Part shown: one piece after another, positions 17,229 through 63,000 of the stretch | Layout: the number at the start of each line of letters is the position of its first letter | How positions within the stretch are numbered: the stretch's first letter is position 1 | Source of the DNA: Octopus bimaculoides | Taxonomy: Eukaryota | Assembly (NCBI RefSeq): GCF_001194135.2 | Contig: NC_068999.1 | Coordinates: forward strand, 50,177,926-50,241,925 | DNA: 64,000 nt | Reading direction: 5' to 3' | Made by a program: the position numbers and the translations under genes | The notes under the pieces: generated by a model | The model's input: only the letters and a program-made list of their open reading frames with translations | The model's database searches: none | Told to the model about the DNA's origin: nothing

Positions 17229-17260
<32 letters not shown>

Positions 17261-39150: not shown

Positions 39151-40225
39151 ATTCAAGGGTGGCTCATAGATAAAATTAGTGGGGGTGCTGCTTCAGAAAA
39201 TGTTTAGCTGTTGTTTAATATTGTGTAAAAAGAAACAAACATATAAAAAGAATATGTATACATAAACAGGGTTGGTTTGCGTTTTAGCCACTGCCAGGCA
39301 GCGTGTTTAATTTGTTCACTGAAAACCACCATGAATTCCACCGTTTTCCAAAAGTCCCCCCCCCTCTAAATCACAAAATAAGGAAGGAAAATCTGCCCTA
39401 TTTTTCAAATCCTGGCAGTAACACTAAAGCTGGAAGCAGGATAATCATCTAATTATCACATTCAAGAATATAAACATGTTTTTAAGTACAAAACATGCTG
39501 AGTCATCATCAGCACTGCGTGAACGACAGTGCTTTCTCTCTCTAGCATGAAGCTTCCTATCTCAGACATGTGAGCATGCACACAACAGCCAAACACTGTG
39601 TCGCTGGAACTGTAAAGTGCATAGTTCTATACAAGGATTTTTATATTTTTTTCATAAACTAAGGGATGGCTACTGACATTAAGCTTAAGGATTATATAAT
39701 GTACAAGTATAAAGAAAGAATTCAAGAAAAAAAGACTCATTATATTGAACGTTATCGATAATATCGAGTGGAAATTAGTGGGTGCTGCAGTGCCTATACA
39801 TGAGCTGCCACTGGTACCATTACCCTTCATTATCTGAAGGAAAAAAAAAAAGTCTAGATGGGCTATTTTCATTCGAAAGCTACTAGCATGGTTTACCCCA
39901 AAACTGAAGAATCTGAAATAAAAAAAGAAGGTTACATAGAATAATGAAAACATAATGATTTTGCCATAGTGTGCAGACTAGCTGGGAAAAAGTTTCATCA
40001 AAATCGATTCACAGAAAACAAAGAAATCCTAAATTTCACTCCTAAGCTATTAGTTTAGTTCTGAGTGGATATACGAGTTTCTTTGTTTCCCTCTACCAAA
40101 TCCACTCAGAAAGCCCTGGTCCGCCTGAGACCATGTATGCATGCGTGTGTCTTTGTCTCCTTGATATGCCTCCATATTGCTCAACAACTGGCATTCATTT
40201 ATTTATGTCCCCATAGCTTTGTCGT

Positions 40226-40363
40226 TCAACGAAAGATACGAAAAGCATAATTACGAGATTTCAGAATAATATTGATGCTCAGTTGTTCAACTAAATCCTT
40301 CAAGGCAGGTAATATATTTTGTTCTTCATCTTCAGCAGTTTTAGAGTGAATATGTTTAAAGAC
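40226..40363 (-). CDS. Unrecognised gene A, probable terminal coding exon
   Basis: TTTTTTCTTCATTTTAG acceptor; phase 0 matches the previous exon; encodes VFKHIHSKTAEDEEQNILPALKDLVEQLSINIILKSRNYAFRIFR then TGA; AATAAA about 25 nt downstream. Confidence 0.6.
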   Translation of the reverse strand, partial: VFKHIHSKTAEDEEQNILPALKDLVEQLSINIILKSRNYAFRIFR

Positions 40364-40717
40364 CTAAAATGAAGAAAAAAATAATATATATATTTTATTA
40401 CTTCTACATTTCACAAAAAAGAAAAACAGTCTTTGCTTTTGGTACTTTTTGTTTTTTTGAAGTAGGAAAGAAGAAATAAAGTACTTACAAGCCAAAGACC
40501 ATTGAAATACTGTGAGCTGGGTTATTTCTTTTCATACTTAATAGTTATGGTATGTTTTTTTTCATTTAGCTGTCATAAAAGAAAAGTAATTTTATTATGA
40601 CTGCATTTGTAAGAAGAGGGATTAGTCAGAAAGAAAAAATGAGATGTTTAATAAGTAAATATCAATTAGACAAACTGGTTCATTCATAAATACACTCACA
40701 CAAAGAAGCTTCTACAT

Positions 40718-41037
40718 CAGGTCTGGCCAACCTGAGGCCCAAGGCTGCATGCAAACTTGTATCTTGCAGATCACTTGATGCTTTCTTGAAATTGGCTTAT
40801 TTAAACAAACATTTCAAAAATTTTATCAAAAATTAAAAATTGTAATGAAAAATAAAAAAGAAAGATACCACTGTTTTTGCAACGATAATATTTTATGTTG
40901 AATCAACGATCATTCATTCATTCATTATAATAATAGCAAGAGAAAGCAAAATGTTTTCAATTCTGTCAGTTTACAAGTGGCCCTCAAAAGATTGTAACTG
41001 AAGTGGCCTGCAATGTAATTTAAGTTCACCTGGCCTG
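40718..41037. mobile_element. Charlie-like hAT MITE
   Basis: CAGGTCTGGCCAAC / AAGTTCACCTGGCCTG termini; TSD TTCTACAT / CTCTACAT (7 of 8 match). Confidence 0.75.
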
Positions 41038-42951
41038 CTCTACATATCAACTCAACTTACTAGAAATAGCAGCCAAATCTCCTTCAAATATACCTCTTAA
41101 TATCTTACTGCAGTTCTATATAAATTTTGTCTAAATAAAAGGTGAGTTGGTCATTGTTGGATTGTTTCTCATGATAGATTTGCTTGATCAAACCCGACTT
41201 GAGACAAACAACAACAACAATAATAAACATATATGCACTTACACTTTCATAGTCTTTCACAGTTCACTGGACCAGTGCTTATCTCCAGTTTCCATGGTGA
41301 TAAGTAGATGAAAGCTAAATAAATGTTACAGTGGATAGGACCCAGTCATATCCAAAAGACTTTCCCAGCAGGTGCAACTGAACTCCTACCCACAAACTCA
41401 TACTAAACAAAATTTGCTTTCAGATGGTTTAAACAGAAGGGTGGATCATAGCCCCACAACATTCTCGGTAAGGCTTCTGAAACTAATTGTAGAAAGAGTG
41501 AATGAAACCAAAATTTACAGAACATTGCAATAGGAAGGAATATATCCTAATATCAAGGCATACTCTGACCAGAGTCATGGTCAAGAAGCTTGGAATAGAA
41601 TACAAATGGGCTAAAGACACCCAAGGGACAGGTTGTAGTATTAAATCAATGGTTAGATTTAAGCTTACATACACACACACAACCTTTAATCTAGTGATAA
41701 GAAAATGAGAGACAAATTTAACCCTAGGTAAAAACACTGGTCTATTGCAAGTCATCATCATCTTTTCTATGCCCACCTTTCCATGCAGTGTTTTTGTATT
41801 AAGGTTAGATATGCTCTTCCTGTTGCCAATCTTTTCTTTTTTCCACCCTTTAGCATAACATCCACAGCGATACAGTTTGTGAGTCGGTATGTTTGTCTCC
41901 TTGACTTGACATTGCATGATAGTTGCAAGTGGGTATCTCTGTCACACAAGTAGTGTTATATATTTCCAACATTATGCAAGAACATGTGTGGCCATGGGGA
42001 AATATTACTTTGCTTGGAATCAAGGGTTGGTGACAGGAGGGGTATCAGGCCACAGAAAATCTGCCTCAATAAACTTGTCTGATCCAGACAAGCATGATAG
42101 CGTGCACATTAAAACAATGATGATGATGGGGTCTTTACATAGGTGTCTAATCTGCTAGAAATAGCAGCCAAATTTCCATCAAATCAACTCCCACCTGCAC
42201 CCAAGTGAGAAGATACATAAAATAATGTAGTCCTAGATACAGTATTGGTGACAAACTAGTAGAAACATTTGAACATTGAATAGAAAGGCTTGGTGTTAGG
42301 AAGGGCATCCAGCCATAAAAGCCCTGCCAGGACAGACACAAGTCTGGTGCAGGTTCCTGCCTGGCTGACTCCTGTCAAACTGTCCAGCCCAAGCCAGCAT
42401 GGAAGACAGACATTAAATGATGATAAAGATGATGATATATATATTATACATACATAAATTTACATATATATGTGTGTGCATATATATATATTGCCAGTGC
42501 CCCTGGACTGGCTTGTGTGGGTGGCACATAAAAGACACCATTTCGAGCGTGGCCGTTGCCAGTATCGCCTGACTGGCCTTCGTGCAGGTGACACGTAAAA
42601 GCACCTACTACACTCTCTGGGTGGTTGGCGTTAGGAAGGTTATCCAGCTGTAGAAACTCTGCCAAATTTAGATTGGAGCCTGGTGTTGCCATCCGGTTTC
42701 ACCAGTCCTCAGTCAAATCGTCCAACCCATGCTAGCATGGAAAGCGGACGTTAAACAATGATGATATATATAATTTTTCCATTTACCAACTCCACTCACA
42801 AGTCTTGGTCTACAGAGCTTGGGATTGAAGTAGAAGATATTTTTTGTCCAAGTTGCCATGCAGTGGGACTGAACCTGCAGCCAAATAGTTGTTGAGCAAG
42901 TTTCTACATAGCCATGCATAACTACAACATAAAAATAATAAGAATACTTAC

Positions 42952-43051
42952 TGTTGGTATCGCTTTATAACCCTGCTTAAGCTCTACTTCCAAATCACGT
43001 CGGTAATATTTCACTTCTCCAGCAATTTCAAGTGTACCAATGAGATCAGTC
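42952..43051 (-). CDS. Unrecognised gene A, 100-nt variable coding exon
   Basis: TTTTACAG acceptor and GTAAGT donor; only one frame is open: TDLIGTLEIAGEVKYYRRDLEVELKQGYKAIPT (phase 2 to 0). The paralogous exon keeps the same length, frame and splice sites. Confidence 0.75.
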
Positions 43052-44158
43052 CTGTAAAATGAATTATGAATCTGACAAACACTGGAATCATATTCATCAT
43101 CATTTTAATGCCTGCTTTTTCCATATTAATCAGAGATTTATTGAGGCAGGTTCTTCTACAACTGAATGCTCTCCCTGTCATTAACCCTTCTTTGATTCTG
43201 AATATTATTTTCATTTTTTCTGAATGAGATGCTAATCCATCACAGAGTTAATAATCCCTAAGTACCACTGACAAACATTCTCAGCTGAGTGTGCTGGAAT
43301 AATGTGAAATGAAGTGCCTTGCTCAAGAACACAATGTAATGGCTGGGCTGAGAACTGAACATACAATCCAACAACCATCCTAACTATTAGGCNNNNNNNN
43401 NNNNNNNNNNNNNNNNNNNNNNNNNNNNNNNNNNNNNNNNNNNNNNNNNNNNNNNNNNNNNNNNNNNNNNNNNNNNNNNNNNNNNNNNNNNNNNNNNNNN
43501 NNNNNNNNNNNNNNNNNNNNNNNNNNNNNNNNNNNNNNNNNNNNNNNNNNNNNNNNNNNNNNNNNNNNNNNNNNNNNNNNNNNNNNNNNNNNNNNNNNNN
43601 NNNNNNNNNNNNNNNNNNNNNNNNNNNNNNNNNNNNNNNNNNNNNNNNNNNNNNNNNNNNNNNNNNNNNNNNNNNNNNNNNNNNNNNNNNNNNNNNNNNN
43701 NNNNNNNNNNNNNNNNNNNNNNNNNNNNNNNNNNNNNNNNNNNNNNNNNNNNNNNNNNNNNNNNNNNNNNNNNNNNNNNNNNNNNNNNNNNNNNNNNNNN
43801 NNNNNNNNNNNNNNNNNNNNNNNNNNNNNNNNNNNNNNNNNNNNNNNNNNNNNNNNNNNNNNNNNNNNNNNNNNNNNNNNNNNNNNNNNNNNNNNNNNNN
43901 NNNNNNNNNNNNNNNNNNNNNNNNNNNNNNNNNNNNNNNNNNNNNNNNNNNNNNNNNNNNNNNNNNNNNNNNNNNNNNNNNNNNNNNNNNNNNNNNNNNN
44001 NNNNNNNNNNNNNNNNNNNNNNNNNNNNNNNNNNNNNNNNNNNNNNNNNNNNNNNNNNNNNNNNNNNNNNNNNNNNNNNNNNNNNNNNNNNNNNNNNNNN
44101 NNNNNNNNNNNNNNNNNNNNNNNNNNNNNNNNNNNNNNNNNNNNNNNNNNNNNNNNNN

Positions 44159-44197
<39 letters not shown>

Positions 44198-44428
44198 CTG
44201 TGTGTGTTTGTATTTGTCCACCACCACTGCTTGAAATAAGAAATAAGATAGATAATGGTGAATTAAACAAAAATAACAAAAAGACAAAAAGCAGCAAAGA
44301 AGGTAGAGATACAGCAATTAACAAAGAAAGAAGTGAAGGAATGCAAAGAAGGAAGGAAGGAAGCTGGAAGGATGCAAAAAAGCAAACAAGCGAAAAAAAA
44401 AGGGAAGATGTATATATTTAAGAGTTAC

Positions 44429-44462
44429 CAGAATCAAATGAATAATAGGAACGGCCAGCCAT
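44429..44462 (-). CDS. Unrecognised gene A, first coding exon (whole exon 44429-44482), MAGRSYYSFDS
   Basis: Strong pyrimidine tract plus CAG acceptor; upstream in-frame stop; GTGATGG start context; GTAACT donor (phase 1). The coding sequence is identical in the inverted copy at 56556-56589. Confidence 0.6.
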
Positions 44463-44584
44463 CACACAGGTCTATTAATGAGCTGATTGGGGAAAAAAAC
44501 AAATACAATATAAGTCAATAAGCACAAAAAGAAGACAACACAGGAGGGAGATGTTTTAACAAAGGGATAGACATTATTCTAACT

Positions 44585-44815
44585 CAGTGGTTCTCAAACA
44601 TTTTTCATCTGTGAACCCTTTTGGTACTTATTTTATTTGGATAGACCACCATAGCCATTCGATGTGTGTAAAAAAGAAGATCCAAATGTATTTTTATAAA
44701 ATATTATTAGGGATTATATAAAAAAAATATTTTGTGTATAGTAGAAGTACAGCCAATTTATTGCAGATAAATTTTAACAAGAAAACCTTATATGGATCCT
44801 GTTTGAGAACCCCTG
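44585..44815. mobile_element. hAT-type MITE
   Basis: CAGTGGTTCTCAAAC / GTTTGAGAACCCCTG TIRs; TSD not recognisable. Confidence 0.65.
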
Positions 44816-46547
44816 ACCTGTTTCAATACAGTTTCAACAATAATAGTTTGTATATATACACATAGTATTATATATATATATATATATCATCTGTATGTAT
44901 ACATACATGCATGTCTCGTTTCTGTTTTTTTCGTTGTTCGAAAAAAGTTCGTTTTTTGTCCTCGTCTTTATGTTTTCGTTTCTCATTGTGTTTAACGTTT
45001 TCTGTGATGTCCTGTACCCATATATGCATGTATGTATACATATAGATGTCAGTATGTACATACATGTATGGATATTTGCATATAATTATATATTATATAT
45101 GTTATTATATGATCGAACGCCACGCACTGTCTCCAAAACACGAGGCAGCTTTCTTTACTCATAACTTTTACAAAAATGGGTCATTTTTAATGAAATTTTC
45201 CATAAATATCTGGCATAACTACAGAGTTGTAAGCTCTATAAGTGAGGAATACGTACACCCAGTGTTTCGGGTTAGGGTTTTTATTACGCCGAAAACGGGT
45301 GGTATCCGTATTCTTTACCTTCGCTCAATTTTCTACAAATACTTTACAGGATGTGTAAATTACGAGTATATTGAAATTTGAATGTGTAAAGGAAAACAGT
45401 GAGCACTTACATACTGACACTCCTCAATTTATTTCGAAATTTCAACTACCATTTTGAATATAGGATGTGTTGCTATGTATGTGTACGAGCCCACTAATTT
45501 TCTATTTTCATATTAAGTTTAAATTTCGATATTATCTTAATCTACATAATCTGAAAGGTATTTGGCATAACTAGAGTTGTACGCCCCAGACTTTGGAAGG
45601 TCATAACTTTAAGAAAAATGAATATTTTTAAATGAAATTTTCTATGCATATAGTATTTATTATGTAGATTCCGAATATACAAACATTTCCGGTGAAAGTG
45701 TTTTGGAATGGGGATGGGGGACAATTTTCGGAAATTCCAACACAGTCCACTTAAATTCTTCTTAACTTCCAGGAAAATTAATATTTTTTCGTGAAATTTT
45801 CTACAAATATACCTTGATATGGCATATATATANNNNNNNNNNNNNNNNNNNNNNNNNNNNNNNNNNNNNNNNNNNNNNNNNNNNNNNNNNNNNNNNNNNN
45901 NNNNNNNNNNNNNNNNNNNNNNNNNNNNNNNNNNNNNNNNNNNNNNNNNNNNNNNNNNNNNNNNNNNNNNNNNNNNNNNNNNNNNNNNNNNNNNNNNNNN
46001 NNNNNNNNNNNNNNNNNNNNNNNNNNNNNNNNNNNNNNNNNNNNNNNNNNNNNNNNNNNNNNNNNNNNNNNNNNNNNNNNNNNNNNNNNNNNNNNNNNNN
46101 NNNNNNNNNNNNNNNNNNNNNNNNNNNNNNNNNNNNNNNNNNNNNNNNNNNNNNNNNNNNNNNNNNNNNNNNNNNNNNNNNNNNNNNNNNNNNNNNNNNN
46201 NNNNNNNNNNNNNNNNNNNNNNNNNNNNNNNNNNNNNNNNNNNNNNNNNNNNNNNNNNNNNNNNNNNNNNNNNNNNNNNNNNNNNNNNNNNNNNNNNNNN
46301 NATATATATATATATAAGATAAACAAGAGTGAAATATACATCCAACTACGTGCATCCACATACCAACTTTCTCACACCTTTATATATATATATATATATG
46401 TGTGTGTGTATGTATATATAACAAGCGCACGTGATTATATGCATGTATATGTACTGCTTACTCGTATCTAGTAATAAATTATACGATTCAAAACCTTTAT
46501 GCAGCTGTGTTTTTTGTAGAAATAAAAGAAGTGATAATACACGATAC

Positions 46548-46650
46548 CTGTCCAAAGAACGACCAGCATCAAGCGACCACCGGATGCTTAATTGCCACTG
46601 TGCTCTGTGACGAGCTGAGGGAGGAGGAGCGAAAGGGCCACTCGATGGCT
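46548..46650 (-). other. Unrecognised gene A, non-coding exon 1 (5' boundary approximate)
   Basis: CTTTGGACAG|GTATCG donor. The exon and the following about 110 nt of intron align in inverted orientation with 53300-53560. Confidence 0.55.
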
Positions 46651-48909
46651 ACTTGTAAGTGGTGGAGGTGAGAGATGCTAAAGCAGGCGCAAGACGATAG
46701 TGAGAAAAGAGTAAAGTAACAAATGAATATGAAATTAAATATTTATCATCATTTTCACACACTATGAGGCATATATATTACATAGAATAAAATTTCATCG
46801 ATCCAAAAAATGTAATTAAACATATGCGCGCGCAAACACATTTCTGCATTCACACACACGCATATGTATGCCCTTACATAGATGTACATATGTATTATTT
46901 CTTTACTACGCACAAGGGGCTACACACAGAGGGGACAAACAGATTAAGTCGATCATATCGACGCCAGTGCATAACTGGTACTTATTTAATCGACCCCGAA
47001 AGGATGAAAGGCAAAGTCGACCTCGGCGGAATTTGAACTCAGAATGTAGCGGCAGACGAAATACCGGTAAGCATTTCGCCCGGCGTGCTAACCACTCTGC
47101 CAGCTCGTATATATGTCCCAACAGAGTGGTTAGATGTGTATCATGGTAAACAGAGGCAAAAGGAATGTGTATGCCTTTGAAGATTGTTTTCAGAATAGGA
47201 AACGGCGTAGGAGTAGTTTTGTGGTAAGTAGCTTGTTTACGAACCACATGGTTCCGGGTTCAGTCCCACTGCGTGGCACCTTGGGCAAGTGTCTTCCACT
47301 ATAGCCTCGGGTCGACCAAAGCTTTGTGAGTGGATTTGGTAGACGGAAACTGAAAGAAGCCCGTTGTATTTATGTATGTATATNNNNNNNNNNNNNNNNN
47401 NNNNNNNNNNNNNNNNNNNNNNNNNNNNNNNNTATATATATATATATATATGTCTGTGTGTTTGTGTGTCTGTTCCCCCACCATCGCTTGACAACCGATG
47501 CTGGTGTGTACACGTCCCCGTAACTTAGCGGTTCGGCAAAAAGAGGCCAATAGAATAAGTACTAGGCTTACAAAGAATAAGTCCTGGGGGCGATTTATTC
47601 GACTAAAGGCGGTGCTCCAGCATGGCCGCAGTCAAATGACGGAAACAAGTAAAAGAGTAAAAGAATAACACAAGAGATTGCCATCCTAATCTAATGTTAC
47701 TATTAATAACAGTACTACCCACTGTTCACTTTAATCTGAATGTATACCTCACAGCTCCATGGCAACTCTACCATCTGTAAATAAAACAAAATTATGAATA
47801 CATGAAACCCTGAATTATTCCATTATTCTCAGCACGAGAGACTATACATATGCAGTGACTGTAAATTCGCCCATTTACCTGGAATGAGACGCACACTCCA
47901 TAAAGCAATGTCAGCCAACTGCAAGCAAGACATCTTACTCTACCACTACCATTAAATGCTAAATCACACTCAATAATTTCTACACATGTAACCTGGAATC
48001 CTAAAATCTGTTGCCATTCCCAACACAATAGATTATATATGATGTGTGACTGTCCCTTCAATCATCTTTCAGAGACTCGACGCACTAGTAAAAACATGAC
48101 ACCAAACCACCACTAAATCCGCAATAAAAATTTCCCTTACAATGGCCATGTTGGTGCAGACTTTCATTGAAACCCAGAGAGTCACCCAGATACACAGGGT
48201 ACAATAGTAAAATCAACAGCTGTAAACCGTATAACTATAACCATATTCAACAGTACAACTACATCAACTCCAGACAACAGCTCCTTCCAAAACAAAAAAA
48301 ACAAAAAATTTAGCTATGATGAATTAGGCAAAAGAAGTAATAAAAAAAAAAAAGACTTCTTATTCTCACACTGCACCAAACACTGCTATTGCCCCCGTGC
48401 ACAACCACACCACTGTTGCCATTAATCCACAAAATCAGCTCTACAATATGCTGAACGTACAAGGTCTTTTGCACTTCGCAAATTGAACAGATGTATCATA
48501 TCTGCCAGTAAAACCCAAAATTACCTTCAATATTTTTTTTATAATTTGACCCACTTATTGGTGAGTCATGTTTCAAACAGCCTGCATTACGAAAGAAGGT
48601 TGCCCACACCAGTTTTAGACAATGTAACCTTATATGCAGATAAATAATTTCCTTCCTTCGATTCACTCATTGATCAGGGTTGATCTAGGACTGATATATG
48701 CTATGAACCACCCTAGGCAATAAACAGCGCTTATATTCTTTCTACTCAAATAACAGCTGGTCCCCGATCTTCCTATTTTGTTACATTGTTGTAATTAAAG
48801 CTTTTTTTACCTCATGTTACCACTTAATATTGAATTCCTTATTTAGTGTGTATGTGTGTGCGTGCGTGTATACATAAAGATACACATATCCAATCATTCA
48901 CACATGTAC

Positions 48910-49235
48910 ATCATCATCGTCGTTTAACGTCCGCTTTCCATGCTAGCATGGGTTGGACGATTTGACTGAGGACTGATGAAACCGGATGGCAACACCAGCC
49001 TCCAATCTGATTTGGCAGAGTTTCTACAGCTGGATGCCCTTCCTAACGCCAACCACTCAGAGAGTGTAGTGGGTGCTTTTACGTGTCACCCGCACGAAGG
49101 CCAGTCAGGCGGTACTGGCAACGGCCACGCTCAAAATGGTGTATTTTATGTGCCACCCGCACAAGAGCCAGTCCAGGGGCACTGGCAACGATCTCGCTCG
49201 AAAATCCTACGACGGCCAATCAGGCGGTACTGGTA
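48910..49235 (-). mobile_element. SINE/LINE-tail repeat family ending in (GAT)n; other copies at 1-190, 31180-31410, 34820-35180, 42490-42765
   Basis: Shared GGATGCCCTTCCTAACGCCAACCACTC...GTGCCAC core and CATCATCAT tail. Confidence 0.8.
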
Positions 49236-49304
49236 CATATATACACATAACTGGGCCTCTCTATATCCATATATATATATATACCTCAATGTGTATATAC
49301 ATAT

Positions 49305-49630
49305 ATAGGGGTAGACAAAATAATGGAAACACCTTAAAATTTCAAACAAATTTATTCTAATATGGAACTGGACCGCCTTTGGCAGTAATTACAGCTTGAA
49401 TTCTATGAGGTATGGACTCGTAGAAAGTTTGATTTGTTTCCAAAAGAATTTTTGTTCATTCTTCAGCTAAAACAGTCTCCAGTTCTTGTAGTGATGATGC
49501 TGGAGGATATCGACTCCTTATTTTTTCTAAAATGCACCATAAATGTTCAATAATATTGAGATCTAGGGATTGTGGTGGCCAGATAAGATGTTCAACTTCA
49601 CTAGAATGTTCCTCATGCTATTCAGTAACA
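49305..49630 (-). mobile_element. Tc1 transposase C-terminal fragment with terminal repeat
   Basis: VEHLIWPPQSLDLNIIEHLWCIL...ESIPHRIQAVITAKGGPVPY* (WPxxSPDLNxIE motif); TA-flanked end AGGGGTAGACAAAATAATGGAAACACC. Confidence 0.85.
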
Positions 49631-52600
49631 AATTTAGCTGTGTGAATTGGTGTGTAGTAACGCTGTGCGCATGCGTAGTTTCACGCATGCGTGGAATTCA
49701 ACAACCAAGCTTTCCCCCGACGTCGCCAAGTTTCAACAGGACATCATTACCACCGTCAATATCATTACCACCACACATACAGAACAGCTATATTACAGTT
49801 CCTCCGCCGACGTCTTCACCATCAATGTACTGTCTACCACAATGTCGTGCGCCAACAACCCCACCACCAGGGACACACCATATAAACACACTCGGTTTTA
49901 TCTTCACTGTGGAGTGGAATTTATCCACTCACGCACAACAGTCAGAGCTAGCCGAATTGGATATTCCGTNNNNNNNNNNNNNNNNNNNNNNNNNNNNNNN
50001 NNNNNNNNNNNNNNNNNNNNNNNNNNNNNNNNNNNNNNNNNNNNNNNNNNNNNNNNNNNNNNNNNNNNNNNNNNNNNNNNNNNNNNNNNNNNNNNNNNNN
50101 NNNNNNNNNNNNNNNNNNNNNNNNNNNNNNNNNNNNNNNNNNNNNNNNNNNNNNNNNNNNNNNNNNNNNNNNNNNNNNNNNNNNNNNNNNNNNNNNNNNN
50201 NNNNNNNNNNNNNNNNNNNNNNNNNNNNNNNNNNNNNNNNNNNNNNNNNNNNNNNNNNNNNNNNNNNNNNNNNNNNNNNNNNNNNNNNNNNNNNNNNNNN
50301 NNNNNNNNNNNNNNNNNNNNNNNNNNNNNNNNNNNNNNNNNNNNNNNNNNNNNNNNNNNNNNNNNNNNNNNNNNNNNNNNNNNNNNNNNNNNNNNNNNNN
50401 NNNNNNNNNNNNNNNNNNNNNNNNNNNNNNNNNNNNNNNNNNNNNNNNNNNNNNNNNNNNNNNNNNNNNNNNNNNNNNNNNNNNNNNNNNNNNNNNNNNN
50501 NNNNNNNNNNNNNNNNNNNNNNNNNNNNNNNNNNNNNNNNNNNNNNNNNNNNNNNNNNNNNNNNNNNNNNNNNNNNNNNNNNNNNNNNNNNNNNNNNNNN
50601 NNNNNNNNNNNNNNNNNNNNNNNNNNNNNNNNNNNNNNNNNNNNNNNNNNNNNNNNNNNNNNNNNNNNNNNNNNNNNNNNNNNNNNNNNNNNNNNNNNNN
50701 NTTTCTTGCTGGCCAGCGATTGAGCAAGGACGTGTTTAGCTGCCTCTCTCCATCTTTCGAACTTACGCTAGACGGCTCGCTCACATCTACATACCAACGT
50801 CCCAACAACCATGCTCACACACACAGAAGACGTCTCAACAAACAAGAGCTAAAGATGTATATATTCCACCTTGAATAAATGTTGTTTGTGTTGATAGTCT
50901 GGAGTTCAGCGTTCCGTTAATTCTTGATTTTATATAGGAAAGTCAGGTATACATCTAATGATGTATAACCCACTTTCCACTAAAGGTGCATTAATCACTG
51001 GCATATTCAATACTGTACACTGTATCTGAATCAATTCACTAGCATTACTACCTCAGCCTTGCAAGCTCTATTGCATACATGCACATGCATCTCTATTATG
51101 CATCTACCGCCTTGTTTTGCAACACGTCTGCGCCAGCTCAATTCTTCTCCCGACTCAAAGCACGTCGGATGTTCACATGCTCTGCGCTCATGTTTAGACA
51201 TAATTTCTCCCTGTTAGACCCCCGTTTGGTCACGTAATTAACAGAGAAAATTATCTGTCTTCTGCATCACCCCAGCATGCTACACTCTCGTTCTTGCTAA
51301 CTCAGCAATTAACCACGACAACAGCACCAGACGCATTTCACACACTGCAACCCTGCAGGAAGATCTTTCGTATCACGGATTGAGAATACACGCACTCACT
51401 CGCTCACCTCAGCTTATTTGACAGACAATTTCGAAACGTGCACCTGCACTCCTGTATACGCCGTCACGCGCTTATTTGCTGTACTGCTCAGTCACTGACT
51501 GCATACATTTTGGCGCGCAAAGCGACACCGATATTCGTATTAATCTGAATAGAAAACTCCTCTCACCTGATATGCAAAATTTCTCCTCAGCGATGCGCTT
51601 CTTTTGTCTCCTTCGATCGTTCGTTTTCTTTCCCAGAACCTCACTGCCGAGGGGAGTGATGTAGTGGACCTTGCAAGCATGAAGTGGATTCGATCCACCA
51701 TAGCCAAATTTAAATTAACTGTTCAACAGAATGTTTCTCACGGTGGAACAATGGTTATTCTTTGACAGCAGTTTTACATTTGCCAGATTGCCTTAGCTAG
51801 GCCGGAATAATATCTTGACCCTTATAACTTCTTCTACTTCACCAAAAGCTAGAATAGAGATATCATAGTACCACCAACGAAGCCCATTGTTCTCAACGAT
51901 TTGTCTATCCTTCTGAATAGTTATAAAAACAAGAACCCGAAAGCAAAAGAAAGTCACTTCGGTAACAACTCAGTGAGAACGAAGTCTGGCTGACCAGCTA
52001 GAACCTTGGTCAGAGGGAGAAATGAAGTTTACTGTCAGCAACTGTAAGACAACCCTACAACTCTAGCTCTAATTCTGTTCTATTACATCATTCTATCTCT
52101 CTCTGTAATTACTACTAAACAATGAAGAGGACACAAACACTAACTTTACTTCGCATGCTTTTGGATTTATCATAACCTGCCCGTCGGACATAGTGGATAA
52201 CAGCTAGCCTTCGGCCGTACCTTTGTACCCTGTTGTGTTCACCACTCTGATTGGTTGGTATTGGCGCAATTTGTCTCTTGCTCTATTGCGCGCCAAGATG
52301 CAACCCAACCAATCGTGGGACAGTCTTTTTTGAACCCCAGTTTGAGATGACAGTATGTTATAAATAGCGAGCCTCTCACCGTCACAGTTTGTCAGTCTTT
52401 CGGCTCAAGACCTTCTGGCACCTGTACTCATCCTAACCTTTTTCCTTCCATGAACTATGTATGGAATTGTGAAGCACCCAGCAAGTGAAAATCATCATTT
52501 TCCTACAAATTTCACCCGTTACAAACGAAATACACACCGCCGATAGTTGTTGACAAACAACAGCAGTAATTTTAGCCAGCTGAATACACGTCATTGATTG

Positions 52601-53299
52601 GTTGAAATCACCGAAATACGACAACTTTAACACGAAATAACTTCGTGAATAGAATTTTTTCTAACAACGCTAAGAGTAAAAGATGTTCTATATGACACGT
52701 TCTACCAGTATACGAAGTTTCAAAGTGTTTAGTTAAAGAAAATTAATTAATCGAGCTGCCCATGAAAAGGAAAAGATCCTTTTTCTTCGTATTTCGCCAA
52801 AAATATTTCTAAAATAAGTGAAAAATCAAGAAATTAGTGTGGGGTTAAATTCGTATTAAGATTTTGAAAACGTGTTCCTAGTATGTCAGGTTTTCCATTT
52901 AGGAACTNNNNNNNNNNNNNNNNNNNNNNNNNNNNNNNNNNNNNNNNNNNNNNNNNNNNNNNNNNNNNNNNNNNNNNNNNNNNNNNNNNNNNNNNNNNNN
53001 NNNNNNNNNNNNNNNNNNNNNNNNNNNNNNNNNNNNNNNNNNNNNNNNNNNNNNNNNNNNNNNNNNNNNNNNNNNNNNNNNNNNNNNNNNNNNNNNNNNN
53101 NNNNNNNNNNNNNNNNNNNNNNNNNNNNNNNNNNNNNNNNNNNNNNNNNNNNNNNNNNNNNNNNNNNNNNNNNNNNNNNNNNNNNNNNNNNNNNNNNNNN
53201 NNNNNNNNNNNNNNNNNNNNNNNNNNNNNNNNNNNNNNNNNNNNNNNNNNNNNNNNNNNNNNAAAAAAAAAAAAAATCCTAAAGTGGGTGTGGGTCTTT

Positions 53300-53444
53300 A
53301 CCTCCGCCTCGGTTCGTCCTATCCCTCCTCCCCCTTACGTAACAGCGTTCATTAGGCGTTCTGTTGTCGGTTGGTCTTGGTTGTGCTTTGGACAGTCTTC
53401 ATACGAAGTACCTTCCAAGTCAATTCTCTTCGAAAAGATTAAAG
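53300..53444 (+). other. Unrecognised gene B, non-coding exon 1 (5' boundary approximate)
   Basis: Inverted homolog of 46548-46650; AAAG|GTAACA donor; carries 49 extra nt (53396-53444) relative to gene A. Confidence 0.55.
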
Positions 53445-53588
53445 GTAACATGTATTATCACTTTGTTATTTCTACAAAAACAGCTACATAAAAGTTTTGA
53501 GTCGTGTAGTGTGTTACTAGATACGAGTAAGTTGCACATATACACACATAATCATGTGTGTGTGTATACATACATATATATGTGCGTG

Positions 53589-53652
<64 letters not shown>

Positions 53653-53810
53653 CTGATGTGTTTGTGTAGACACTATAATATACAATTCTTCTATCTCTCA
53701 CTCACGCTGTTCATAAATCTTTTTAACTTTGATCATTTTATTTATTATTCAGTCATGTTTCCTTTTTTTTTTCCAGCGTCGGTTTTCAAACTTGTTAGAT
53801 ATATAACACA

Positions 53811-53936
53811 GGCACTATCATGCTATTAACTGTCAGAAGTGAAAGTGCTCACTGCCTGCTAGTGAAGTATCTGTCTGTGACAGACATATAGCTCGCTCCG
53901 GCCAGCACTTCTGACAGCTAATAGCATGATAGTGCC
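53811..53936. mobile_element. Merlin-type MITE (126 bp)
   Basis: 31-bp TIRs with 1 mismatch starting GGCAC; perfect 8-bp TSD ATAACACA at 53803-53810 and 53937-53944. Confidence 0.85.
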
Positions 53937-54377
53937 ATAACACAAATTCATGATTTTCAAAATATTTTCATACCCCACGAAATGATGGCTAATCAATCAA
54001 AAACACTCATTAACATTTAGTGTTATACTTGCTGTTGTTTTGGATCCGTGTGGAGTTTCTGATAATTCACACAACTCGAATTTGACGCTTAATTGTAAAA
54101 AAAAAAAAAGAAAAAAAGAAAATGGAAAAATATATACAAATTAAACGAAGTATGCAAAAAATTACGAAGATTCATTTATTTTTAAATGTTTTATACTACA
54201 AAATAAAACAAACGGAAAACGGGCACTTGCTAATATAAACACATGTTGCACGATACAAGGGGCGGTAACTTACTTTTACCGGTCAGGTATTATTAATGAT
54301 ACGAGGGGCCCGACAATATCACCAGCGAATTGTTCACAATCTTTTTTTCTTAAAATTCAGTTTATAACTAATATAGA

Positions 54378-55300
54378 ATGTCATATTTTGTGCCTGAACG
54401 TGGAATTTTTAATGTTATGACCTTATTTCGTCTCGGAAGAGATTTGGGAACAACGGAAAAGGCCATTGACTGGTGTAGAAAATTTGGATTAGTATAAAGA
54501 CAAGAAATTTGTTGAGGAGTACCTTGTGTTAATGGAAGTTATATACCCATTCAATTGATAGAATAACTTGGAGATGTACTGTTTGTCGCAAAACTATAAG
54601 CATGCAGAAAGGCTCGTTTTTTGAAAAAAGTCAGTTGGAAATCTGGCAAATAATAGCTTTTATTCATTTATGGTGCATCAGTGTTGGAAAAGAAAGAGAT
54701 CTTAGTAGTGAAGCAGGAATTGCGCAATGTGAGATAACCTCATCCACAACATATGCAGACTGGAATCAGTTCTGTCATGATGTTTGTGTAGCTCATTTTC
54801 TAAAATATCTCCCCCCCCCCAAAAAAAAAATAGGTGGTACACAGGTTATTGTGGAAATTGATGAAACAATGATGCAAAACATCAGTGAACATCAGTGGGT
54901 ATTTGGAGAACACTCCCCCTCACAAAATCTTGGTTTTTTAGTACCAGTTAAAGACCAAACTGCCGAAACATTGCTCCCAATTATCAATGAATTCATATTG
55001 TCAGGAAGCATTAAATATTCTGATAACGGAAAGCATATCAAAGTTTGTCACAAAAGACATTATATAAACATTTGACGGTAAACCATACCATTAATTTTGT
55101 TGATCCACTGTCACACTGTACCACAAACCATGTTGATTAAATGTGGTCTTCATGCAAAAACAAAATAAAATCAACTCATGAAGTACATAGTAATGATTTG
55201 GTTGATTTCTTAGCAGAATTTATGTGGAGTCAGCAATTTGGATATGAACCATTTTTCAACTTTTGGACCCAAATAGCCACTGAGTTATATGTTATATAAG
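54378..55300 (+). pseudogene. Degraded Merlin (IS1595/ISXO2-like) DDE transposase
   Basis: IGGTQVIVEIDET, WVFG, VPVKDQTAETLLPIINEFILSGSIKYSD, then a frameshifted TVNHTINFVDP...FLAEFMW; stops and frameshifts. Confidence 0.88.
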
Positions 55301-55779
55301 TTTTCTCTGTAAACTGAAAACAAAAATGAAAGTTATAAAACTTGCATACGCCTTAAACATATGTACTCTATTGTTTTATAATTATTTCTGTTGTCTATCA
55401 CATCATAAAATGGGCGAAGGTAAAGCGAGTGCACACTGACTAACCATAATGCTAAAGTTTTAGTAGACAAAAACAGGTGTCTGTATTCAGACACACATAC
55501 TTGTGTGTGGCTTTTTATGGGTATATCTTTGTGTGTGTGTGTGTGATATCTACATATATATGGCTATGATCCTAGGAGTTTTTTCTTTCTCACCTGGGTG
55601 AGGAGCATTAACCAAGGTAGTTTAGGATATTAATTCACCTTTTGAAATCTGACCTGGAAGTCGTTTTCTATAAGCAAGTCAAGGACCTAAGATTTGCTCT
55701 TGATCTTGACAACAGCATTAGAATGGCAAATGTTGAGCTGTATCTTCATCTTGAGGAAGGGATGGAAGTCCGCAGGTGC

Positions 55780-56480
55780 CAAAATGGTGAAATGGGTGGG
55801 TGCAGAAATGATGCCATGTTGTGTTTGGCAAGAAACTCACAAGTGAGGCGAGCTTGGTGACAGGATGTGTTGTCATGCAGAATCTAATTCTTTGTGCTCC
55901 ACAGATCTGTTACTTTTGTCGAACGTCCTCCCTCGAATTCTTCCAAACATCACAGTAGAACTCTCAATTGATGGTCTGGCCCTGAGGGATGAATTCATGA
56001 AGCACAATATTGTGGAAGTTGAAAAAAAAAAGATGAGCATACTCTTGATTGAGCTGCGACTCTGTCGTGCCTTCTTCAGTTGTGGAGAAGAAGGGCTCTT
56101 CCATTGTGATGACTGCCTGCATCTTGGGGTTGTATCTATAGAACCAACTATTGTCACCAGTGATGACCCTTGACATGAAAGTTGGGTCATCAGTGGCATG
56201 GAGTCTGAACAGACTTGGATGCAATGTTCTTTCTGCTCAGTAATCAACAGGCAGGGGACATGCTTGGCATAAACAGACTGCATGTTCAATTCGGATGTTA
56301 GGATTGCCTGCACAAACACATACATCACAACAACAACAACATCAGCAATGTCGTTGACTGCCCTCCAACATTCCTCATGCACAAGCTGATGAATTTTACC
56401 CACATCTCTGGGGGTGACATTTGTGGTAGGTCTTTCAGATCACTCAGCCTTCGAAGCACCTCTGCCACTAGAAACATTAT
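55780..56480 (-). mobile_element. Degraded mariner transposase
   Basis: VYAKHVPCLLITEQK, DDPTFMSRVITGDNSWFYRYNP, KKARQSRSSIKSMLIFFF, HEFIPQGQTIN across several frames. Confidence 0.88.
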
Positions 56481-56555
56481 GTACAACTCATTTGTGTTTA
56501 TTGACTTATATTGTATTTGTTTTTCCCCCCATCAGCTCATTAAAAGACCTGTGTG

Positions 56556-56589
56556 ATGGCTGGCCGTTCCTATTATTCATTTGATTCTG
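56556..56589 (+). CDS. Unrecognised gene B, first coding exon (whole exon 56536-56589), MAGRSYYSFDS
   Basis: TTTTCCCCCCATCAG acceptor; upstream in-frame TAA; ATG at 56556; GTAACT donor at 56590. Confidence 0.6.
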
Positions 56590-56828
56590 GTAACTCTTAA
56601 ATATATACATCTTCCCTTTTTTTTTCGCGTGTTTGCTTTTTTGCATCCTTCCAGCTTCCTTCCTTCCTTCTTTGCATTCATTCACTTCTTTCTTTGTTAA
56701 TTGCTGTATCTCTTCCTTCTTTGGTGCTTTTTGTCTTTTTGTTATTTTTGTTTAATTCACCATTATCTATCTTATTTCTTATTTCAAGCAGTGGTGGTGG
56801 ACAAATACAAACACACACAGATATATAT

Positions 56829-56865
<37 letters not shown>

Positions 56866-57925
56866 CACACATGTATGCACAGACACATATGTGATAGGCT
56901 ACTTTCTGCATCCATCTAATNNNNNNNNNNNNNNNNNNNNNNNNNNNNNNNNNNNNNNNNNNNNNNNNNNNNNNNNNNNNNNNNNNNNNNNNNNNNNNNN
57001 NNNNNNNNNNNNNNNNNNNNNNNNNNNNNNNNNNNNNNNNNNNNNNNNNNNNNNNNNNNNNNNNNNNNNNNNNNNNNNNNNNNNNNNNNNNNNNNNNNNN
57101 NNNNNNNNNNNNNNNNNNNNNNNNNNNNNNNNNNNNNNNNNNNNNNNNNNNNNNNNNNNNNNNNNNNNNNNNNNNNNNNNNNNNNNNNNNNNNNNNNNNN
57201 NNNNNNNNNNNNNNNNNNNNNNNNNNNNNNNNNNNNNNNNNNNNNNNNNNNNNNNNNNNNNNNNNNNNNNNNNNNNNNNNNNNNNNNNNNNNNNNNNNNN
57301 NNNNNNNNNNNNNNNNNNNNNNNNNNNNNNNNNNNNNNNNNNNNNNNNNNNNNNNNNNNNNNNNNNNNNNNNNNNNNNNNNNNNNNNNNNNNNNNNNNNN
57401 NNNNNNNNNNNNNNNNNNNNNNNNNNNNNNNNNNNNNNNNNNNNNNNNNNNNNNNNNNNNNNNNNNNNNNNNNNNNNNNNNNNNNNNNNNNNNNNNNNNN
57501 NNNNNNNNNNNNNNNNNNNNNNNNNNNNNNNNNNNNNNNNNNNNNNNNNNNNNNNNNNNNNNNNNNNNNNNNNNNNNNNNNNNNNNNNNNNNNNNNNNNN
57601 NNNNNNNNNNNNNNNNNNNNNNNNNNNNNNNNNNNNNNNNNNNNNNNNNNNNNNNNNNNNNNNNNNNNNNNNNNNNNNNNNNNNNNNNNCAGCTGAGAAT
57701 GTTTGTCAGTGGTACTTAGGGATTATTAACTCTGTGATGGATTAGCATCTCATTCAGAAAAAATGAAAATAATATTCAGAATCAAAGAAGGGTTAATGAC
57801 AGGGAGAGCATTCAGTTGTAGAAGAACCTGCCTCAATAAATCTCTGATTAATATGGAAAAAGCAGGCATTAAAATGATGATGAATATGATTCCAGTGTTT
57901 GTCAGATTCATAATTCATTTTACAG

Positions 57926-58025
57926 GACTGATCTCATTGGTACAATTGAAGTTAATGAAGAAGTGAGATATTACCGACTTGACTTGAGTAGACAGCTTGA
58001 CGAAGGTTATCGACCGACCTTAACA
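57926..58025 (+). CDS. Unrecognised gene B, 100-nt variable coding exon
   Basis: TTTTACAG acceptor and GTAAGT donor; open frame TDLIGTIEVNEEVRYYRLDLSRQLDEGYRPTLT; 18 of 33 aa identical to the gene A exon. Confidence 0.75.
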
Positions 58026-58629
58026 GTAAGTATTCTTATTATTTTTATGTTGTAGTCATGCGTGGCTGTGTAGTTAAGAAACTTGGTCAACAACATTTTG
58101 GCTTCAGGTTCAAACCAACTGTGTGGCACCTTGGGCAAATGTCTTCTTCTTTAGCTCCAGACTCTGTAGAGCAAGACTTGTGAGTGGAGTTGGTAGATGG
58201 GAAATTAATATATATATATATATATTCTTTTTAGTCATTTGACTGCGGCCATGCTGGAGCACTGCCTTTAATCAAATAAACCGACCCCAGGACTTATTCT
58301 TTGTAAACCTAGTACTTATTCTATCAGTCTCTTTTTCCAAACCGCTAAGTTACAGAGACTTATACATATCAACATTGGTTGTCAAGCAATGGTGGGAGAC
58401 AAATACAGACACACAAACACACACATATATATATACATACAAACATAAATACATACATACATACGACAGGCTTCATTCAGTTTCTGTCTACCAAATCCAC
58501 TCAAGGCTTTGGTCCATCTGAGGCTATACTAGAAGTCACTTGCCCAAGGTGCCATGCAGTGGGACTGAACTTGGAACCATGTGGTTGGTAAGCAACTAGA
58601 GGCAGGGCAGAGCAGGGTTCACCTAATTA

Positions 58630-60010: not shown

Positions 60011-63000
60011 TAATTGAACAGAACATTTGAGGTCCTATATAAATGAAAGTGGATGAACCCTTAATGACTTGATTAACCTGGGAATTTTTTGATATTCAAG
60101 ACACAAATTATATTGCCCTTGCCTGCATTTCAGGCACTACCTACTGCAGACATAGGACTACCTGTTCGCTGATTAGGGCTGTATAGAATATTTGCAGACT
60201 GGACCCAACCTAGAAGTGGAGATTCCATCTGGTTTGCCAGTCCTCAGTCAAAGCGTCCAACCCATGCTAGCATGGAAAGCGGATGTTAAACGACGATGAT
60301 GATGATATCATTATCATTTATTTAACATCCCTTTGTTCTTGTTGGCATGGGTTGGACAGTTTGGCAGGAACCAGTGAGCCAGATGACTGTACTTAACTCC
60401 ACTGTCTACTTTGGCATGGTTTCTACAGCCCTTCATAAAACCAACCACTTCACAGTGTAGCTGTGTGTTCCTTTGTCTTGAATTTGCACATTGATTGTAA
60501 ATGTGCATCACAATCTGTCAAAAATGTGCTTGGCCTTGAGCAAACATAACCTCTGTATGGTCTAGAGGGAATTTGCTGTTAGGTTTTGGCCATAGCTTAA
60601 GCAGGTACAGCGCCTTCAGATGTAACCCAGCCTGAAAGTTGATGCTGCAAGAGAACCTGAGAGGTAAGTGAATCACACCTTGTCCCTCATACTACATTTC
60701 CTGACTCATTACTCTTCTCACAAATGTATTCATAGTACATAAGGTTACTTTTTCTTTCATGGCAGCTAAATAAAAGAAAACATACCATAACTCTTAAGTA
60801 TGGATCTAGGTGCATGCTTTTTTAATTGTAAGTAGTTTCTTTCTTCTTTCCTACTAAAAAAAAATATATCAAAAGCAAAGACCCTCATTGCCATCATTAG
60901 AGCTTCATCAGCAATATGCCAGCTCCCACCCCCAATCGATGTCTTGACAAATTGGTAGAATCATTAGAATGTCAGACAAACTGTTATGTTTTAGTTTCAA
61001 ATTACACTGAGGTCAGTTTGGCCTTTCATCATTTGAGGGGCAGAGGTGGGTGGGGTGTGTGTGTGTGTGATATAATTGACCTTTCTCAATCCACAGACTT
61101 TTGGCTTTGAGTCTATGTTAGAAGTTACTGTTATAAACTTAGGTGGCAAGCTGGTGGAATTGTTAGTGTGTTGGACAAAATGCTTAGTGGTACTTCATCC
61201 TGTTCTTTACATTCTCAGTTCAAATTCTGCTGGGGTTGGCTTTGCCTTTCATTCTTTTGGGATCAGTAAAATGAATACCTGTTAGATACTGAGGTTGTTA
61301 TAACCAACTTACTCTCCCCTGAATTTGCTGAGCTTGTGCCTAACTTTAAAGCTATTAAGGCAGCAGGCTGCCAGAATTGTTGGCTCATCAGACGAAATGT
61401 TTAATGGCATTTCTTTTGGCTCTTTACGTTCTGAGGTCAACTTTGCCCTTCGTCCTTTCAACGTCAAGAAAATAAGTACCAGTTGAGCACTGGGGCTGTT
61501 GTCATCAACTTACTTTTCCCCTAAAATTGCTGACTTTGTGCCAAAATTTGAAACCATCAAGGATTAGTAGAATTGTTGGAATATAAAACAAAATAACATA
61601 TTTGTTCTGGATCTGTACATTCTGAGTTCAAATCTTGTTGACATCAATTTTAGATTCATCTTTCTGAGCCAATAAAATAAAGTAGTAGTTTGAACATTCC
61701 ATTTAAATACTGGATTCAATATAATCAACTATTTTTCACCCACTAAATTTCAGCTCTTTTTACGTTCTGGGTTCAAATCCCATCAACGTTCAATTTGCCT
61801 TTTATCCTTTCGGGGGTTGATAAAATAAAGTACCAGTCAAACACTGGGGATCGATGTAATCGACTTGCCCCCTCTTGCCAATCCATCACAAGGTTACACA
61901 TTTACAACTGAGTACCAATGTGAAACGAAGCGTTTTGCTCAAGAACACAACTGACCGCCTCGTCTGGGATTCAAAACCATAATCTTACGATCCTGAGTGC
62001 AACACCCTAACCACTAAATATCTATTCAGCAGGAGTGTAATTTATTTTTACTCTGAAGAGGAGAAGTAGTGTTCATGCATGGCCTCTGTACACTCCTCCA
62101 AGACTATTCCTATTGATGAGGTTCTTTATGTTCAGTGTTAGAAGGAAAATGTTGGTTTGGAGGAAATTCCTTTGGGTTACAGATGTGCGATGCAGGTATG
62201 GTTAAGGAGTTAAAATATTTGTTTTGAGATTGCAAGATCCTGGATTTGATCCCACTGAGTGGCATTGGGGGAAAATGTTCTTTACTCTAGATTCATGTTG
62301 ATCCAAAGCCTTGGGAATGAAATTGGTGAAGCAGGAATTTATGTGGAATCTTGTCAGGTGGATTGTACCCATAATCTAAGGGTCCTGCCTTGTCACATAT
62401 TCTTATGCTGATTCAGTTTGGAATTATGTAAAGGGTAGATCATGTCTATGGAATACTCAGCCACTGACATTACAGTTCTATAATTCAATGAGTCATGTGT
62501 GCATTTAATTGAACAATTATATTGTCCAAAACAATGTAGGCTATAGATATCATCCAACTATTTCATTTGTGGTCTTCCTTTTGCTCTCCCGCCAGTTGAA
62601 CTTCACCATAAAATTTGTGCTGTGATTCTTTTCTCAGATGTTGTAACCATATGGCCATGTTATTAGATCTGAGACCTCTCCATGCAGGGGGGTAGTGGCT
62701 TAACCTGGAGTAATTCTCTAATCTTCAAGCTATGCATTCACATTATTGTGTAACATCATTTGGTAAAAAAGAAAAAAAAAATTGATAATTTCCATATATT
62801 TTATCTTTTTCTTGTTTCAGACATTAGACTGTAGCTAATCTGGGGCACTGCCCTGAAGAATAAATTGACCTCAGTTATCTTATTTTAAAGCCTGGTACTT
62901 ATTCCATTGGTCTCTTTTTCCCAGATGCTTAGTTTGGTGGGGAGAGAGTAAACAGACTGCCACTGGGTGTCAAGTAGTGGTGGGGAGACAAACACAGATG

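Follow-up and report, generated by a model that had tools for sequence, protein, structure and literature searches.

The window analysed here is a 64,000-nucleotide (nt) stretch of the Octopus bimaculoides genome, assigned to assembly GCA_001194135.2, chromosome CM046619.1, for which a CEP19 open reading frame (ORF) is on record. Besides CEP19, it probably carries two real paralogous genes, here called A and B, that lie head to head and belong to a family restricted to Octopus. Gene A would run on the minus strand from ~46700 to 40198, and gene B on the plus strand from ~53300 to past the window end. Each would consist of a non-coding exon 1, a 54-nt exon with the ATG, an exon 3 of ~80 nt, a 100-nt exon 4, an optional 32-nt cassette and a terminal exon. 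The predicted products are small proteins of ~80-115 amino acids (aa) with a polar N-terminus and no recognisable domain.

Two candidate genes in inverted arms

The window has 37% G+C, is rich in short interspersed nuclear elements (SINEs) and is interrupted by 13 runs of N. An intact, single-exon CEP19 gene (33870-34577, plus strand; 235 aa; Pfam CEP19; 83% identity with its O. sinensis counterpart) was used as the anchor for window identity and synteny. One fetched locus, L001, equals window positions 23870-44577 letter for letter, N runs included, so the public chromosome assembly is unable to close the gaps.

An earlier reading of this stretch, made from the sequence alone and called the sequence-only reading below, had reported three inverted homology blocks. 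Self-comparison recovers all of them at essentially the same positions, pairing 42764-43287 with 58215-57690 (89% identity), 44159-44528 with 56859-56491 (96.5-96.7%) and 46381-46549 with 53610-53443 (78%), and adds a fourth, collinear block that had been overlooked (40429-40632 with 60882-60698, 72%). The four blocks are collinear around a spacer of ~6.9 kb that separates the two exon 1 copies. The arms are not nearly identical over their whole length; only ~1.3 kb of the ~6 kb in each arm can be aligned, at 72-100% identity. The gene-bearing parts of the blocks have no further copies within the window, where only the SINE parts recur.

The exons and splice sites proposed in the sequence-only reading (the 54-nt and 100-nt exons, the exon-1 donors, and the gene A terminal exon with its AATAAA) are present exactly as described and are listed in Table 1. 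The GT donor of exon 1 is conserved in gene A, in gene B and in the A-type gene of Octopus vulgaris, where the exon 1 region of gene A has a homologous stretch (locus L005, ~5900-6051). Gene A carries a 49-nt deletion in exon 1 relative to gene B and the O. vulgaris A-type gene. The ATG in exon 2 stands in good context. When all six frames of exon 4 were checked, both copies were open only in the frame that had been proposed. Direct splicing of exon 2 to exon 4 was considered as the main ORF and rejected, because in both copies that join (frame +2) meets a stop after 24 codons.

A counterpart of the gene A terminal exon was searched for in arm B within the window and none was found. The homology of arm B to the O. 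vulgaris B-type gene ends at 62561, ~220 nt short of the expected terminal exon, which by this alignment would be either displaced past 64000 or lost.

Table 1. Predicted exons of genes A and B, gaps expected to hold exon 3, and related tracts (window coordinates). OvA and OvB are the A-type and B-type genes of O. vulgaris, on loci L005 and L004.
Feature	Position	Strand	Details
Gene A exon 1, non-coding	46548..46700	-	5' end undefined; donor AG|GTATCG after 46548
Gene A exon 2, 54 nt	44429..44482	-	ATG at 44462; MAGRSYYSFDS; ends in phase 1; cag|..|gtaac
Gap expected to hold gene A exon 3 (~79-82 nt, phase 1 to 2)	43393..44158	-	OvA exon 3 at L005 10934-11015; flanks align on both sides
Gene A exon 4, 100 nt, TDLIGTLEIAGEVKYYRRDLEVELKQGYKAIPT	42952..43051	-	acag|..|gtaagt; orthologous to OvA exon 4, L005 12272-12371
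Gene A 32-nt alternative cassette exon	40538..40569	-	cag|..|gtatga; within the fourth inverted block
Gene A terminal exon	40198..40363	-	Coding sequence 40363-40226 (VFKHIHSKTAEDEEQ...IFR*); TGA; AATAAA at 40203-40198
Gene B exon 1, non-coding	53300..53444	+	Donor AAG|GTAACA after 53444; 5' end may enter the gap 52908-53262
Gene B exon 2, 54 nt	56536..56589	+	ATG at 56556; cag|..|gtaac
Gap expected to hold gene B exon 3	56921..57689	+	OvB exon 3 at L004 10944-11022; flanks align on both sides
Gene B exon 4, 100 nt, TDLIGTIEVNEEVRYYRLDLSRQLDEGYRPTLT	57926..58025	+	acag|..|gtaagt
Gene B copy of the 32-nt cassette exon	60766..60797	+	AG/GT intact
SINE directly downstream of exon 4, in all four gene copies	42764..42920	-	Arm B copy 58060-58215; groups by paralogue
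Exon-2 conversion tract, arm A side	44159..44528	-	~70% identical to either O. vulgaris copy; partner 56491-56859
255-nt tract, arm A side	43033..43287	-	100% identical to 57690-57944; putative recent conversion tract

Orthologous genes in Octopus vulgaris

When the joined peptide was run with HMMER (phmmer) against 1.84 billion representative proteins, it matched an O. vulgaris protein, CAI9736934 (P0007; E=1.7e-10), and yielded no family match outside Octopus, which agrees with the earlier proposal of a lineage-specific family. Additional HMMER matches (P0008-P0011) were to repeat proteins aligned through several repeated stretches and were judged spurious; a word-indexed protein search with the same peptide gave no match. 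CAI9736934 and CAI9736933 (P0014; 104 aa, the longer isoform) are two isoforms of the A-type gene, and CAI9736931 (P0012; 87 aa) is the B-type product, all on O. vulgaris chromosome OX597832.1. In UniProt, CAI9736933 and CAI9736934 correspond to A0AA36BMN3 and A0AA36BN06, and CAI9736931 to A0AA36BNZ2, annotated as "hypothetical predicted proteins". The O. vulgaris proteome holds only two family proteins. The genes had been called unrecognised; this is accurate for the O. bimaculoides and O. sinensis protein sets searched, from which they are absent, but the family is already in the databases as uncharacterised proteins of O. vulgaris.

The two species agree in exon-intron structure and phases, with exons 2 and 4, the cassette exon and the terminal acceptor coinciding. 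CAI9736934 reads MAGRVYYSFDD-VSGTFPSKQTVKWSDMKTGSNPHAYIEG-NDLIGEIEIGGEVKYYRLDLGRHLAQGYKAIPT-VFKTYSV, in which exon 2 is followed by 28 residues without a counterpart in the window, by exon 4 and by the start of the terminal exon. Gene A exon 2 is orthologous to the first coding exon of CAI9736933 and CAI9736934, its cassette exon to an exon of CAI9736933 (LNVKKHTITIK), and its terminal acceptor is shared with the O. vulgaris A-type gene (L005 17885). The acceptor, ATG and donor of exon 2, as well as the length (100 nt) and splice sites of exon 4, are the same in O. vulgaris and in the window, and the exon 4 peptides are 70% identical between the A genes and 58% identical between the B genes. 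Non-coding blocks of L005 follow arm A collinearly for more than 10 kb, starting upstream of exon 1 and continuing past the terminal exon, and those of L004 follow arm B in the same way up to 62561. By sequence, exon structure and synteny, genes A and B are the orthologues of CAI9736933/34 and CAI9736931, respectively. Every structural proposal of the sequence-only reading thus has a match in O. vulgaris evidence that is independent of it.

One of these proposals concerned an exon running from phase 1 to phase 2, predicted to be hidden in the two N gaps (766 N at 43393-44158 and 769 N at 56921-57689). O. vulgaris has such an exon exactly there, 82 nt long in the A-type gene and 79 nt in the B-type gene (tcag|TA...GG|gtaggt; entered in phase 1 and left in phase 2). 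In the gap-free O. vulgaris sequence, L005 10528-10670 and 12088-12564 are collinear with the two sides of the arm A gap, and L004 10557-10737 and 11807-12250 with the two sides of the arm B gap. Since the gap flanks align on either side of the O. vulgaris exon 3, the missing exon should fall inside both N gaps. The corresponding O. vulgaris stretches measure ~1.4 kb (A) and ~1.1 kb (B). Continuity of order and orientation across the gaps is supported by these alignments; the O. bimaculoides exon 3 letters themselves are unread. Reading raw sequence alone was therefore able to predict an exon concealed by an assembly gap.

Gene order is shared as well. In O. vulgaris, the B-type gene lies on the minus strand (ATG at 47,670,301), the A-type gene on the plus strand (ATG at 47,766,642) and CEP19 on the minus strand (~47,871,099-47,871,833). 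Both species thus have the order B, A, CEP19, with A and B head to head and A and CEP19 convergent. In the window (34577-56556) the spacers B-A and A-CEP19 span 12.1 kb and 5.6 kb, whereas in O. vulgaris (OX597832.1, 47.67-47.87 Mb; loci L004, L005 and L006) each of them spans ~96 kb. The pair had been described as a decayed palindrome. The inverted, collinear arms bear this out, but the tight arrangement is not conserved, with the ATGs 12.1 kb apart in the window and 96 kb apart in O. vulgaris; the tight palindrome is specific to O. bimaculoides or to its assembly, and the divergent pair itself is old. The available O. sinensis CEP19 locus (L002) covers the 10-kb flank and stops short of the gene positions, and the family motif was not seen on the CEP19 contig L003.

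These data bear on two trivial explanations of the pair, both of which we consider most improbable. According to the first, the exons are pseudo-exons that arose by chance in a dispersed repeat or a large transposon of which the window has two copies. The arms are indeed filled with SINEs, and the third inverted block is partly SINE-derived. However, the exon-bearing parts, which a high-copy dispersed repeat would multiply, are present in just two copies in the window and in a single copy in each of the loci L004 and L005. Both copies are also syntenic with single O. vulgaris orthologues, and the proteome contains two family proteins. According to the second explanation, two haplotypes of one gene were joined head to head during assembly. 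A short-read scaffold with many gaps, the mirrored gaps of 766 and 769 N and the 100% identical stretch at a contig edge would fit such an artefact. Against it, most of the arms is unalignable, the aligned parts vary in identity from 72 to 100%, and intron 1 holds different ORFs in the two arms. The gap-free, long-read O. vulgaris assembly, moreover, has both copies, each orthologous to one arm. The ideas of a dispersed repeat and of an allelic mis-assembly, either of which would undo the case for a gene pair, were accordingly rejected.

The 3' ends of the genes vary. In the O. vulgaris A-type gene, the terminal exon contains one extra A, with a frameshift and an earlier stop. Splicing directly from exon 4 gives VFKTYSV* (CAI9736934), while inclusion of the 32-nt cassette exon offsets the 1-nt insertion, restores the frame and gives KHIRSKTAEDKEQDDIPAL* (CAI9736933). 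The AG and GT of the cassette exon are intact in both O. bimaculoides arms. The B-type gene has an unannotated terminal-exon homologue at L004 ~17758 (17758-17880), open in the same frame. Its annotated last exon lies 15 kb further downstream (L004 27332-27379 is listed for this gene), and 26 nt separate the end of the gene model from its called neighbour, a Glyco_transf_11 gene; the annotated model is probably a chimera. The annotated last exon and the missing terminal exon are thus flagged as likely errors in the O. vulgaris B-type model. On these comparisons the C-terminal tail is clearly labile rather than conserved, and the conserved core consists of exons 2-4, ~71-72 codons.

As described for the O. 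vulgaris annotation pipeline, splice variants entered the gene set solely through PASA updates from Iso-Seq and RNA-seq assemblies (PMC10700109). As the A-type gene is annotated with two isoforms, this description implies spliced transcripts of that gene, which is an argument from the pipeline and not a direct observation.

Gene conversion and exon divergence

The four gene copies were compared with one another and are labelled ObA and ObB (O. bimaculoides genes A and B) and OvA and OvB (the O. vulgaris A-type and B-type genes). Three regions cluster by paralogue, A with A and B with B, namely exon 4 from nt 20 to 100, the downstream SINE (orthologues 92-94% identical, paralogues 80-82%) and the cassette block (87-93% against 70-77%). 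This grouping implies that the duplication and the insertion of the downstream SINE predate the split between O. bimaculoides and O. vulgaris. Read this way, the alignments show an inverted duplication older than the species split.

The 5' part of the genes groups by species instead. In the exon-2 block, ObA and ObB are 96.7% identical and OvA and OvB 95.7%, against ~70% between species, and one SINE is present in both OvA and OvB and in neither O. bimaculoides copy. The 255-nt tract that is identical between ObA and ObB takes in intron 3 together with a lineage-specific SINE tail and nt 1-19 of exon 4, and the SINE tail before exon 4 of ObA and ObB aligns with neither O. vulgaris copy at that position. 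Concerted evolution, in which paralogues are closer than orthologues, is therefore seen in the exon-2 block and intron 3, and lineage-specific SINEs are common to both paralogues. The mosaic of species-wise and paralogue-wise grouping is the mark of gene conversion, by which the two paralogues exchanged sequence in each lineage once the species had separated. On this pattern, the comparison shows a 5' part (the exon-2 block and part of intron 3) that has been homogenised by conversion, independently in each species, since the split. Because the conversion tract stops 19 nt inside exon 4, it also explains the picture of an identical intron next to a divergent exon.

The same picture could arise if the two loci were host genes for intronic small nucleolar RNAs (snoRNAs) or microRNAs, with functional introns and exons free to vary. 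The introns are closer than the exons between paralogues, and exon 1 is CT-rich, as this explanation would have it. Between species, however, the same introns are 88-91% identical, which is the neutral level (9-10% divergence), so that the intron identity of the paralogues reflects conversion and not constraint. No Rfam family and no transfer RNA was found in the window, and an apparent C-box proved to be an (ATG)n microsatellite that varies between species. We regard a small-RNA host as very improbable.

Exons 3 and 4 are shown by these alignments to be paralogue-specific and, as far as can be read, more diverged than the neighbouring introns. Between ObA and ObB, exon 4 has 25 differences in 100 nt, whereas the intron has none in 236; 15 of its codons differ by replacement and 1 differs silently. 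Between OvA and OvB, exon 3 differs at 13 of 79 positions, against 42 of 1217 in the surrounding introns (p=1e-5), and exon 4 at 24 of 100, against 26 of 269 in introns (p=5e-4). Orthologous copies of exon 4 (nt 20-100) likewise differ at 18.5% of positions, whereas the collinear non-coding sequence (3.2 kb) differs at 9.1% and 10.3% (p=0.008 and 0.02).

The ratio of nonsynonymous to synonymous substitution rates (dN/dS), calculated for exons 2 and 4, lies between 0.93 and 2.1 in the six pairwise comparisons. Values of ~1-2 throughout are what would be expected of a transcribed, spliced locus without protein function, either a young proto-gene or a pair of long non-coding RNAs, in which the ORF drifts neutrally. 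The frameshifted tail of OvA fits this explanation too, as do the lack of a domain or confident fold and of anything outside Octopus. On the other side, drift predicts equal divergence of exons and introns, and the exons are 2-5 times more diverged. No readable exon of any copy shows damage to the ORF, the phases, the splice sites or the ATG context, and the sole coding indel is 3 nt long; a rough neutral expectation for this is ~1e-3 (~0.03 for no stop times ~0.035 for no frameshift). Neutral drift of the ORF strikes us as unlikely, although it is the alternative that deserves most weight. Together, these data argue for a translated ORF with diversifying variable patches, for which we infer positive selection but do not consider it proven. 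The invariant stretches MAGRxYYSFD, TVKWSDMKTGS, KYYRxDL and QGY may be constrained or merely homogenised.

Predicted proteins and comparison with known systems

The claim that no domain is recognisable held up against all protein-level analyses. Pfam searches with the joined peptide and the O. vulgaris proteins returned only sub-threshold noise, a PDB profile search gave no match, and neither did a Foldseek search with an AlphaFold2 model. By inspection, the N-terminus is polar, as had been claimed. The proteins are probably intracellular and, according to the model, rich in beta strands.

Several observations weigh against a reading of A and B as functional protein-coding genes. The AlphaFold2 model, built from an alignment of 6 rows, is of low confidence (predicted local distance difference test score, pLDDT, of 48) and consists mostly of beta strands, and there is no Pfam, PDB or Foldseek match (the best Foldseek hit against PDB, at E=0.49, is not interpretable). 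In the O. bimaculoides record, no gene besides CEP19 is called across the gene A exons, and the databases searched contain no homologue from either O. bimaculoides or O. sinensis among their proteins. Both O. bimaculoides copies of exon 3 and the gene B terminal exon are unread, which leaves the intactness of the genes unproven. Purifying selection is undetected (dN/dS at least ~1), as in a neutrally drifting transcribed ORF, and the C-terminal tail, annotated differently in OvB, carries a frameshift in OvA and is truncated there. Concerning the evolutionary pattern, small patches of paralogue conversion, instead of positive selection, could explain part of the orthologous excess in exon 4, and the 100% identical tract begins at the arm B contig edge beside a gap, where it could be an assembly artefact.

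Two real, head-to-head paralogous genes nevertheless remain the best explanation as a whole. Under it, the ORF would be translated, the exon 3 and 4 patches would be subject to diversifying selection or to selection that keeps the paralogues distinct and resists homogenisation, and the C-terminal tail would be unconstrained and varied through alternative splicing. That conversion homogenises the introns and the N-terminal exon while selection keeps the fast-evolving patches of exons 3 and 4 different is a more tentative proposal, which we put at somewhat less than even. If true, it would provide a compact invertebrate case of concerted evolution combined with diversifying selection, and would point to a recognition or arms-race role in reproduction or defence. 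As a guess that rests only on the evolutionary pattern, the proteins could act as a fast-evolving, small intracellular binding or recognition module of the reproductive or defence orphan type, in an arms-race-like regime.

The O. vulgaris proteins resemble the predicted products in the N-terminus MAGRxYYSFD, the exon 4 motif DLIGxxEI.GEVKYYRxDL..QGY, the phases, the head-to-head arrangement and the position of CEP19 beyond gene A. They differ in the ~96 kb spacers, the frameshift and earlier stop of OvA and the far-downstream annotated last exon of OvB, and, being uncharacterised, they say nothing on function.

In the ampliconic palindromes of the mammalian X and Y chromosomes, inverted arms carry a paralogue each and arm-to-arm gene conversion keeps them >99.9% identical. 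The octopus pair likewise has one paralogue per inverted arm, with exchange revealed by species-wise clustering. However, its arms are short and mostly decayed (a mosaic of 72-100% identity), its spacer is as long as the arms, and conversion is confined to the 5' part and continues in O. vulgaris at a separation of 96 kb.

Snake-venom phospholipase A2 genes, three-finger toxins and conotoxins combine accelerated exons with conserved introns. Similarly, the octopus coding exons diverge beyond their flanking introns between paralogues, with dN/dS at least 1. In contrast to venom-type genes, their products lack both an apparent signal peptide (by inspection) and a cysteine framework, and there is no hint that they are secreted or toxic. 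The similarity of the octopus introns is, moreover, due to conversion, so that the resemblance is one of evolutionary pattern only and not of family membership.

Taxonomically restricted (orphan) genes of cephalopods form a category rather than a family; the octopus pair fits it in small size, in the lack of a domain and in having no match outside the genus among the 1.84 billion representative proteins. The present analysis supplies the O. bimaculoides reference with two gene models that it lacked. As a lineage-restricted pair with a conversion mosaic and exon-specific acceleration, these genes offer a tractable case for studying how young genes are maintained and diversified in cephalopods.

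The difference in spacer size between the species could stem from large insertions in O. vulgaris, or from a deletion or collapse in O. bimaculoides; the A-CEP19 interval of the window contains no N gap. A repeat of ~0.5-0.7 kb is found at 36332-37068 and 63154-63751, with copies beside CEP19 in O. sinensis (L002 15835-16471) and beside the A-type gene (L005 21446-22176). This repeat is a possible marker for the breakpoint behind the 90-kb difference in size.

The longer intron 1 of gene B and the sequence downstream contain three ORFs of 150-176 aa that look transposase- or transposon-like (54602-55075, plus; 55873-56403, minus; 58988-59440, plus). For 54602-55075, Pfam gives only a weak DDE_Tnp_IS1595 match (E=0.043), and the labels considered for the intron 1 ORFs, ISXO2-like and mariner-like transposase, are unconfirmed. 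Within the window, CpG dinucleotides are most frequent in the central spacer (46.5-53.5 kb). A partly tandem, CpG-rich repeat family of ~200 nt occurs at 46896-47107, 61141-61884, 17246-17657 and 21634-21993, one copy being ~250 nt upstream of gene A exon 1; the family is plentiful in the loci of O. sinensis and O. vulgaris as well. The spacer segment 51662-51969 is 77-84% identical to L004 17878-18116, immediately downstream of the OvB terminal-exon homologue, and may be a relic of rearrangement or a third partial copy. A low-copy element at 52580-52779, with CCAAT/ATTGG motifs, has matches of 75-80% identity in O. sinensis (L002 17778-17978) and in both O. vulgaris loci (L004 7504-7605 and 16073-16225; L005 8149-8258).

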